A stretch of DNA of 64,000 nt, taken from Adineta vaga. Taxonomy: Eukaryota; Animalia; Rotifera. The notes under the pieces were generated by a model that was not told where the DNA came from, searched no databases, and was given only the letters and a program-made list of their open reading frames with translations. Both the position numbers and the translations under genes were made by a program. This document shows, one piece after another, positions 5,179 through 6,723 of the stretch. The stretch covers positions 1,178,001 to 1,242,000 of the forward strand of contig CP075496.1 of assembly GCA_021613535.1 (NCBI GenBank), read 5' to 3'. Position 1 is the first letter of the stretch; every line of letters begins with the position of its first letter.

Positions 5179-6723
5179 ATGATGTGCTGTCTATCTGCTG
5201 AAGCACGTGAACAGAAACAAATAAATCGTGAAATTGAAAAACAATTACGTCTTGATAAGAAGAATCAACGACGAGAATTGAAATTACTTTTACTTGGTAC
5301 GTCAGAGAAATTTTTTTGCGAAAAATTCTTTTCTTATTCGCATTTTTAGGAACCGGAGAATCGGGTAAATCAACATTTATCAAACAAATGCGTATTATTC
5401 ATGGTGCAGGTTATTCCGAAGAAGATAAACGTTCATATGTTAAACTTGTTTATCAAAATATATTCATGGCAATGCATATAATGATTCGTGCTATGGATAC
5501 GCTCAAAATCCAATATCGAGATAAACGAAATGAGGTAAAATTCATCTTTTTTGAGAAATGTTTTTTTTTCGACGAATATTTTTTGTTTATAGCAAGAACA
5601 TGCTGCACTGGTTCGATCAGTTGATTATGAAACAGTGACGACATTTGAATCGCAATATGTTGAAGCAATTAAAAGTCTTTGGAATGATCCAGGAATAAAA
5701 GAGTGCTATGATAGACGAAGAGAATATCAATTAACAGATTCAGCTAAATAGTAAAGAAAAGATCATTTCTTTTTCTTTTTTTTTGTTTAAATATGATTTT
5801 GTTTTGTTTAGTTATTTGGATAGTATTGATCGAATATCATCGCCAGGTTATTTACCTACAGAACAAGATGTCCTACGAGTTCGAGTTCCCACAACTGGTA
5901 TTATTGAATATCCATTTGATCTTGAAAATATTATTTTTCGAATGGTTGATGTTGGTGGCCAAAGATCTGAACGTCGAAAATGGATCCATTGCTTTGAGAA
6001 TGTTACATCAATCATGTTTCTTGCAGCATTAAGTGAATATGATCTAGTTCTTGTTGAATCTGACAATGAGGTAAATATGAATTGATCAATAAGAATTCTA
6101 ATCATCATCATCATCTTCTTCTTTTTCTTCATAGAATCGAATGGAGGAGAGCAAAGCATTGTTCCGTACAATCATAACTTATCCATGGTTTACGAACTCA
6201 TCTGTGATCCTCTTTTTGAACAAGAAAGACTTGCTCGAAGAGAAAATCATGCACTCGCATTTGGTTGATTATTTTCCTGAATTCGATGGTATGTTTATTC
6301 ATATTGATTTCATTGTCAAATCTTTTCATTTATCTCCTAGGTCCCAAACGTGATGCCCAAGCTGCACGCGAATTTATTCTAAAAATGTATGTCGATCTCA
6401 ATCCAGATAGTGATAAGATTATCTATTCACATTTTACCTGTGCAACTGGTAAGTTCAATTTGTTCTTGATTTGCTACGATGATGAGAAAATAAACTTGCG
6501 CAGTGGTGCGAGGAGATTATAATAAAGAGATTTCATCGAGCGATGAAGTTATTTATGATATATCTTCAATGAGCACAACCAAGTTCATCCTTGCCCTGAG
6601 TAGCTACAAAAGAATGAAATTGACTTTTATTTTTCTTTAGATACCGAGAATATCCGCTTTGTATTTGCTGCTGTTAAAGACACAATACTTCAATTGAACC
6701 TCAAAGAGTACAATTTGGTTTAG
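5179..6723 (+). CDS. GNAQ: Heterotrimeric G protein alpha q subunit (7 exons)
   Basis: N-terminus [24 protein letters not shown]-loop [25 protein letters not shown], and Gq-diagnostic C-terminus [10 protein letters not shown]. Confidence 0.97.
6473..6604 (+). ncRNA. Intronic box C/D snoRNA, predicted U6 snRNA 2'-O-methylation guide
   Basis: Lies in the oversized (192 nt) last GNAQ intron. Terminal stem GCTAC/GTAGC, box C ATGATGA 6479-6485, box D CTGA 6596-6599. Antisense TCATCCTTGC and CTTGCGCAG(T)GG are complementary to conserved U6 CCCCUGCGCAAGGAUGA. Confidence 0.85.

Follow-up and report, generated by a model that had tools for sequence, protein, structure and literature searches.

A candidate box C/D small nucleolar RNA for the U6 internal stem-loop, encoded in the last intron of a bdelloid rotifer Gq gene

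Introduction

The spliceosome has U6 as its catalytic RNA, in which the internal stem-loop bears a cluster of 2'-O-methyl groups. In human U6, both A70 and C63 are 2'-O-methylated (giving Am70 and Cm63); the two nucleotides occupy opposite strands near the apex of the stem-loop, A70 being the pairing partner of U64 (PMC7960923; PMC13109388). Cm62 and Cm63 are required for efficient installation of m2G72 (PMC13109388). The animal guides are unsettled at both sites. Neither Am70 nor Cm63 had an assigned guide in a 2021 review (PMC7960923); for Am70 the only candidate is a tentative one, SNORD23, and for C63 we found no guide, as that review lists none and a full-text search for 'U6-C63' returned no paper. 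Here we describe a putative U6-directed box C/D small nucleolar RNA (snoRNA) in the last intron of a G-alpha-q (Gq) gene of the bdelloid rotifer Adineta vaga. It lies on a stretch of 64,000 nucleotides (nt) of contig CP075496.1 (assembly GCA_021613535.1, positions 1,178,001 to 1,242,000), which we refer to as the window and in whose coordinates all positions are given; U6 follows human numbering. A preliminary description of this DNA had already read the element as a dual guide for U6 A70 and C63 and as a possible U4-like chaperone of U6 folding.

Among the closest functional counterparts is sno530 (SPNCRNA.530) of Schizosaccharomyces pombe, which acts on the same U6 nucleotide (A64 in S. pombe, equivalent to human A70), and whose deletion abolishes the methylation (PMC10484740). 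It has a degenerate C box, a 12-nt complementarity with one non-Watson-Crick pair, and no hairpin architecture flanked by boxes C and D (PMC10484740). By these descriptions the rotifer RNA stands apart from sno530, as it is fully canonical, intronic, and equipped with a second U6 antisense element. Mammalian SNORD23, a box C/D RNA, yields chimeric reads to the U6 stem-loop, and a proposed pairing would bring A70 to its methylation position (PMC11863803; PMC5389715). In that case it is the D' element that is proposed for A70, below the significance cut-off of the study and without loss-of-function data, whereas the rotifer RNA uses its D element. The human snoRNAs SNORD94 (Cm62), SNORD67 (Cm60), SNORD10 (Cm77) and SNORD7/8/9 are likewise intronic box C/D RNAs with U6 as substrate, several of them acting within the stem-loop (PMC7960923). 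They address other nucleotides and show no covariance-model similarity to the rotifer RNA, and none has been reported with guides for both strands of the stem-loop. Closely spaced D and D' targets are known from Arabidopsis U15, whose guides for 25S A2282 and G2289, 7 nt apart, cannot bind simultaneously (PMC8053127); U15 differs from the rotifer RNA in its ribosomal RNA (rRNA) substrate and unrelated sequence. The literature bears out what the preliminary description had said of human U6 methylation at A70 and C63, of the other sites covered by SNORD7/8/9/10/67/94, and of sno530, and corrects its picture in one respect, by adding the SNORD23 D' element as a mammalian candidate for Am70 (PMC11863803).

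Results

Architecture of the snoRNA

The element carries every component named in the preliminary description, at the same positions: a terminal stem, boxes C and D, and an internal hairpin with the arms TTCATCG and CGATGAA (6532–6547). The host gene, the host intron and the parts of the RNA are as follows.

5179–6724, forward strand: G-alpha-q/11 class G-protein alpha subunit gene (host) with 7 exons, recognized from open reading frames (ORFs), exon borders read from the sequence, the PF00503 domain and the C-terminus
6449–6640, forward strand: intron 6, the last intron, GT..AG, 192 nt, host of the snoRNA; spliced junction present in RNA contigs
6471–6606, forward strand: candidate box C/D snoRNA, about 134–136 nt, delimited by boxes and stems; one regular expression parses the architecture in all 10 sequences
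6473–6477, forward strand: 5' half of the terminal stem, GCUAC, pairing with 6600–6604; invariant in 10 sequences
6479–6485, forward strand: C box AUGAUGA (RUGAUGA); UGAUGA is invariant and the preceding base always a purine
9 nt, forward strand: spacer between the C box and the D' antisense block, read from the sequence
6495–6507, forward strand: D' antisense element CUUGCGCAGUGGU (DNA CTTGCGCAGTGGT), complementary to U6 59–71; 100% identical in nine lineages
6508–6511, forward strand: D' box GCGA, forming G.A/A.G plus G-C and C-G with C' nucleotides 6571–6574
6512–6516, forward strand: GGAGA, 5' strand of the canonical stem in the internal kink-turn, pairing with 6563–6567
6517–6562, forward strand: variable, irregular internal hairpin between D' and C', 46 nt (22–58 nt in orthologues)
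6531–6548, forward strand: apical hairpin UUUCAUC GAGC GAUGAAG, with compensatory changes at three pairs
6563–6575, forward strand: 3' strand of the internal stem UCUUC (6563–6567), AAU bulge (6568–6570) and C' box UGAGCA (6570–6575); CTTCAATGAGC is invariant or nearly so
6584–6594, forward strand: D antisense element UUCAUCCUUGC, of which 6585–6594 (TCATCCTTGC) pair with U6 67–76; 100% identical in nine lineages
6595, forward strand: unpaired base adjoining the D box, C in the window and C, U or A among orthologues
6596–6599, forward strand: D box CUGA, invariant
6600–6604, forward strand: 3' half of the terminal stem, GUAGC, invariant, pairing with 6473–6477

The RNA begins with UUGCUAC, followed by two purines and UGAUGA, and ends with GUAGC followed by UA. 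The terminal core stem has 5 base pairs (bp) in the window and extends to 7 bp in most orthologues. The predicted fold of the snoRNA strand (-33.9 kcal/mol) is more stable than that of shuffled sequences (z = -3.1). The variation at 6595 is expected for the unpaired first position of a guide. With its C/D boxes and terminal stem, a C'/D' pair, antisense elements of about 10 nt or more and conservation that selection has focused sharply on boxes and guides, the element has the hallmarks of the box C/D class, and we regard it as very probably a real and functional member.

Conservation in orthologous introns

Orthologous introns were sought in ENA assemblies and JGI metagenomes with an ORF that runs from the penultimate exon into the intron (6265–6519). 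In several of the matched exon ORFs, the C box or the D' block could already be read in the tail running through into the intron. The snoRNA is present in nine distinct versions of the Gq intron (the window, L001, L002, L003, L006, L010, L011, L042 and L043); L004 and L005 are identical to L003, L008 is identical to L006, and L007 is one base off L006. A single regular expression parses all nine, and the boxes and both guides, whose retention in other rotifers the preliminary description had left to an alignment, are kept in every version. Mean pairwise identities are distributed very unevenly:

C box, D box and C' core: 100%
13-nt D' antisense block: 100%
11-nt D antisense block: 100%
D' box: 94%
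Terminal stem halves: 94–97%
Spacer 1, upstream of the D' block: 69%
Internal region: 62%
Spacer 2, adjoining the D block: 51%
Intron flanks: 40% and 53%

The lineages are fairly close, with third-codon-position differences averaging 8–18% in the flanking exons, so the neighboring intron sequence is the better neutral yardstick; around the snoRNA this sequence is essentially unalignable across lineages. Two Gq loci have no snoRNA, L009 (1802–1847) with a 46-nt last intron and L012 (1679–1745) with a 67-nt last intron. L009 shares its ENA assembly with L001 and L010, and may be the older duplicate Gq copy in a bdelloid genome. L012 adjoins a Tc3-like transposase. Further copies, sought through spurious ORFs across the snoRNA, gave no candidates.

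Complementarity to U6

The 14 nt upstream of each box were placed by script on the Rfam U6 consensus (...AGCAUGGCCCCUGCGCAAGGAUGACAC..., all conserved capitals), as printed when scanning the genuine U6 gene in metagenome locus L023, rather than on a rotifer U6; the identity of rotifer U6 at 59–77 is accordingly taken from this consensus. Guide positions 2–11 upstream of box D form 10 contiguous Watson-Crick pairs with U6 67–76 (GCAAGGAUGA, as expected for this pairing), and the fifth position, U6591, faces A70, as the preliminary description had it. Within the window, GCAAGGATGA has a reverse-complement match at 6585–6594 only. In the D' guide, position 1 forms a G.U pair with G59, positions 2 and 3 pair with C60 and C61, position 4 (U6504) opposes C62 in a mismatch, and positions 5–13 pair with C63 to G71. 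The fifth position, G6503, thus faces C63 and opens a run of nine contiguous pairs over U6 63–71. Among 30,000 random 14-mers with the composition of the snoRNA, 4 reached each criterion, so that either guide match has a chance probability of about 1e-4; the conserved blocks and the U6 complementarity share their edges. We consider U6 A70 a probable target of the rotifer snoRNA, as judged from this pairing. Methylation of C63 through the D' guide is a more tentative proposal, which we put at somewhat below even odds: the second element does pair within U6 59–71 with C63 at the fifth position, as the preliminary description had claimed, but its conserved U opposite C62 leaves Cm63 less certain than Am70.

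An Rfam scan shows no U6 gene in the window, and our literature search turned up no sequence of a rotifer U6. For variants at position 62, metagenomes were scanned with the pattern CATGGCC[A/G/T]CTGCGCAAGGATGA, without a positive control, and 29 loci matched; this one scan returned no bdelloid-type U6 with a base other than C at position 62. The 25 A62 matches were rejected as rotifer U6, since they are repeat copies without upstream U6 sequence, on contigs of 38–51% guanine plus cytosine (GC). The U6 genes with T or G sit on contigs of 41–63% GC and were rejected as bdelloid U6, as nothing ties them to bdelloids. The 25 repeat copies (numbered within L013–L041, mostly from sample Ga0126342) form a family with a 22-nt U6-like core (CATGGCCACTGCGCAAGGATGA), which resembles a short interspersed element with a captured piece of U6. 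Loci L018, L021, L023, L026 and L038 are U6 or U6-like and carry U or G at the equivalent of human C62, L023 being the only complete U6 confirmed by Rfam. Position 62 of U6 therefore varies across eukaryotes, which has no bearing on bdelloids.

Internal kink-turn and covariation

The D' box, termed putative in the preliminary description, proves to be half of a complete C'/D' kink-turn built by GCGA together with UGAGCA at 6570–6575. The kink-turn comprises a 5-bp canonical stem (GRAGA/UCUUC), an AAU bulge, tandem G.A/A.G pairs, and then a G-C and a C-G pair, which stand where the C'/D' consensus has U.U and G-C. Because GCGA and UGAGCA form these two pairs, their deviations from the box consensus compensate each other. 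In L043 the D' box is GUGA, and the pair is kept as G.U.

A structure of 20 pairs was scored on the orthologue alignment. In the internal motif it counts four pairs of the canonical stem and two Watson-Crick pairs of the non-canonical one; the others belong to the terminal stem and the apical hairpin. In this structure 97.5% of cells are paired, compared with 19–58% when the partners are slid, and its covariation score lies above those of all 500 shuffles. Changes on both sides occur at three pairs of the apical hairpin, and the kink-turn stems show one-sided changes only (G-C/G.U and A-U/G.U), with pairing retained. The four counted pairs of the internal canonical stem are paired in 100% of cases, and the fifth is unpaired in L010. 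The loop of the apical hairpin with its closing pair, C(G/C)AGCG (6537–6542), is almost invariant in all orthologues, above a stem that covaries, which suggests that a protein or RNA outside the usual C/D anatomy makes sequence-specific contact here.

Host gene and transcript data

The PF00503 domain was found on homologous exon ORFs, and a search with one exon ORF gave GNA11 as the name on the named matches. The protein terminates in ...LKEYNLV, and the exons flanking the last intron encode ...SHFTCAT / [27 protein letters not shown]. Two of the exon borders read from the sequence are confirmed by spliced RNA contigs from four runs of the same organism. The six introns measure 53, 58, 61, 64, 52 and 192 nt in order, in agreement with the preliminary description of the snoRNA host as the only long intron of the gene. 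Subtracting the 136-nt RNA from the last intron leaves 56 nt, a usual intron size for this gene, so the snoRNA fully accounts for the excess length. This intron is spliced: the junction 6447/6640 (cut +1) is found in RNA contigs of all four runs (X11–X14) at a depth of 158–879. Contigs across the snoRNA intron have a depth of 2.5–4.1, compared with 160–880 on the exons, and run over the exon borders, as expected of unspliced pre-mRNA.

A second abundant set of spliced contigs, joined at the same junctions, differs at 11 of 86 positions (6640–6725) and at 18 of 147 positions (6141–6287); it stems from a paralogous or homoeologous Gq copy that the organism also transcribes. A low-complexity tract rich in CT/TC occupies 6804–7700, after the Gq stop codon; the RNA contigs stop at 6803, and 6804–6900 were skipped as repeats in the RNA-contig analysis. 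About 1.1 kb downstream of the Gq gene, on the forward strand at 7818–8390, lies RPS15 (Ribosomal_S19 family). The order Gq-RPS15 is found in every fetched contig that reaches far enough downstream (L001, L003 and L006–L011), including L009 with its snoRNA-less locus; L012, L042 and the short contigs do not show RPS15.

Comparison with known RNA families

The Rfam check that the preliminary description had proposed leaves the RNA outside the described families: in Rfam 15, no match reaches the gathering threshold anywhere in the window, and the known U6-guide families are not matched. The SNORD23 family appears in neither Rfam scan (up to E = 10), so that orthology to SNORD23 is unsupported. 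The plant RNA snoR19 (RF01595) scored 20.5 bits (E = 7.2), where its gathering score is 60, and shares the string UCAUCCUUG..CUGA; we dropped it as a coincidence. It has been assigned to 18S G1434 and U1448, not to U6 (PMC8053127).

Discussion

A U6-directed snoRNA

Our favored explanation, to which we give a probability of about 0.72, is that bdelloid rotifers encode in this intron a functional box C/D snoRNA specialized for the U6 internal stem-loop. The RNA would be released from the spliced Gq intron, fold into two kink-turns, the terminal C/D and the internal C'/D', and assemble with the Snu13/Nop56/Nop58/fibrillarin proteins. Its D guide would anneal to U6 67–76 and direct 2'-O-methylation of the A70 equivalent. 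Its D' guide, on U6 59–71, would most likely bring about methylation at the C63 equivalent, which lies on the other strand of the same hairpin top, or, alternatively, at least keep the 5' strand of the hairpin open.

Several points weigh against this explanation. The U opposite C62 is invariant in all nine lineages and directly beside the predicted target nucleotide, and a mismatch in this location normally weakens guide activity. The D and D' target stretches overlap at U6 67–71, so both full duplexes are impossible on one U6 molecule. The pairing rests on the U6 consensus, from which the rotifer's own 59–77 may differ. The D' block can fold on itself (CUUGCGC/GUGCGAG), which may add to its conservation. 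Local Rfam scans up to E = 10 brought up only unrelated C/D families, at 10–20 bits, and no U6-specific snoRNA family. Finally, no discrete contig of snoRNA size occurs in the four RNA runs, whose library type is unrecorded and whose contigs cannot show RNA ends; on accumulation of the snoRNA, we regard the RNA-contig data as neutral, speaking neither for nor against it. For Cm63 in particular, the native U6 may pair at position 62, the mismatch may be tolerated, or the D' arm may be a non-catalytic accessory.

The role of the D' arm

The last of these readings is the strongest competitor, although we consider it unlikely. It takes the RNA for a single-site guide in which D alone is catalytic (Am70), and in which the D' pairing leaves C63 unmethylated and holds the U6 hairpin open as U4 does in U4/U6 stem II, aiding methylation of A70 or folding of U6. 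The mismatch at the fourth position of the D' guide, constant in all nine lineages, is what such an arm could display, and D' on U6 59–66 together with D on 67–76 would cover 59–76 without overlap. Extra pairing by the second spacer has been described, and many novel D'-associated interactions are low in methylation (PMC8053127; PMC11863803). On the other hand, the D' element stands directly upstream of a well-formed D' kink-turn and presents a nucleotide methylated in human exactly at the fifth position, with contiguous pairing from the target nucleotide onward. The mismatch itself would vanish if the native U6 had a base able to pair with U at position 62, where the U6 genes of some eukaryotes have U or G.

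A further point for the accessory-arm reading is the likeness to U4. The 5' end of U4 and the D' block both pair with U6 at about 59–71, and 11 nt of the block (UUGCGCAGUGG) are identical to nucleotides 5–15 of human U4, including the U facing C62. Most of this identity is forced, because the same U6 segment is paired; the U facing C62 is the exception. In both RNAs, moreover, a kink-turn of the Snu13 type lies downstream of the strand that pairs with U6 and has GA pairs and an AAU bulge. The rotifer kink-turn, however, is connected in the reverse orientation and adjoins the guide without a gap, in the C/D geometry of a methylation guide. A U4-like chaperone role of the D' element, suggested in the preliminary description, is possible but has no support of its own, as the U4 identity is mostly required by the U6 pairing and the block also folds on itself. 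A bolder combination holds that the RNA is a dual guide for Cm63 and Am70 whose D' arm is in addition a U4-like unwinder, opening the U6 hairpin and perhaps priming U4/U6 annealing. It draws on the fact that the D' arm copies the U4 strand of stem II, including the U.C62 mismatch, beside a Snu13 kink-turn; we consider it improbable.

Other explanations

We attach very little weight to the idea that the element is a genuine box C/D snoRNA whose real targets are rRNA or another small nuclear RNA (snRNA), with an incidental complementarity to U6. The guides were screened against U6, and the string shared with snoR19 belongs to an RNA assigned to 18S sites (PMC8053127). That match is, however, far under threshold, and an incidental origin would require two independent conserved blocks to match one 18-nt stretch of U6, each with a known methylated nucleotide at its fifth position and with block edges equal to the edges of the complementarity. 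Least credible of all is a conserved, structured intronic element that yields no stable RNA, controls how the Gq pre-mRNA is spliced or expressed and resembles a C/D RNA by chance: the region is covered by unspliced pre-mRNA contigs only, and paralogous or other-species Gq copies with last introns of 46 nt (L009) and 67 nt (L012) do without it, but the conserved positions are snoRNA boxes, kink-turn stems and two antisense blocks rather than splice signals, the flanking intron sequence is unconstrained, and we know of no splicing element of such form.

Implications

The favored explanation thus describes a lineage-specific, U6-specific box C/D snoRNA that would be notable for addressing both strands of the U6 stem-loop. 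Bdelloid rotifers would house this U6-specific snoRNA in a signaling gene and not in a translation-related host. If the RNA were a dual guide and unwinder as well, animals would have their first clear candidate for a C63 guide, and U6 modification would be tied to U4/U6 assembly. A canonical, conserved animal snoRNA directed at both sites would provide a sequence template with which the missing guides could be sought in other phyla, and the rotifer snoRNA may serve as a simple test system for how two guides handle the two strands of one hairpin.

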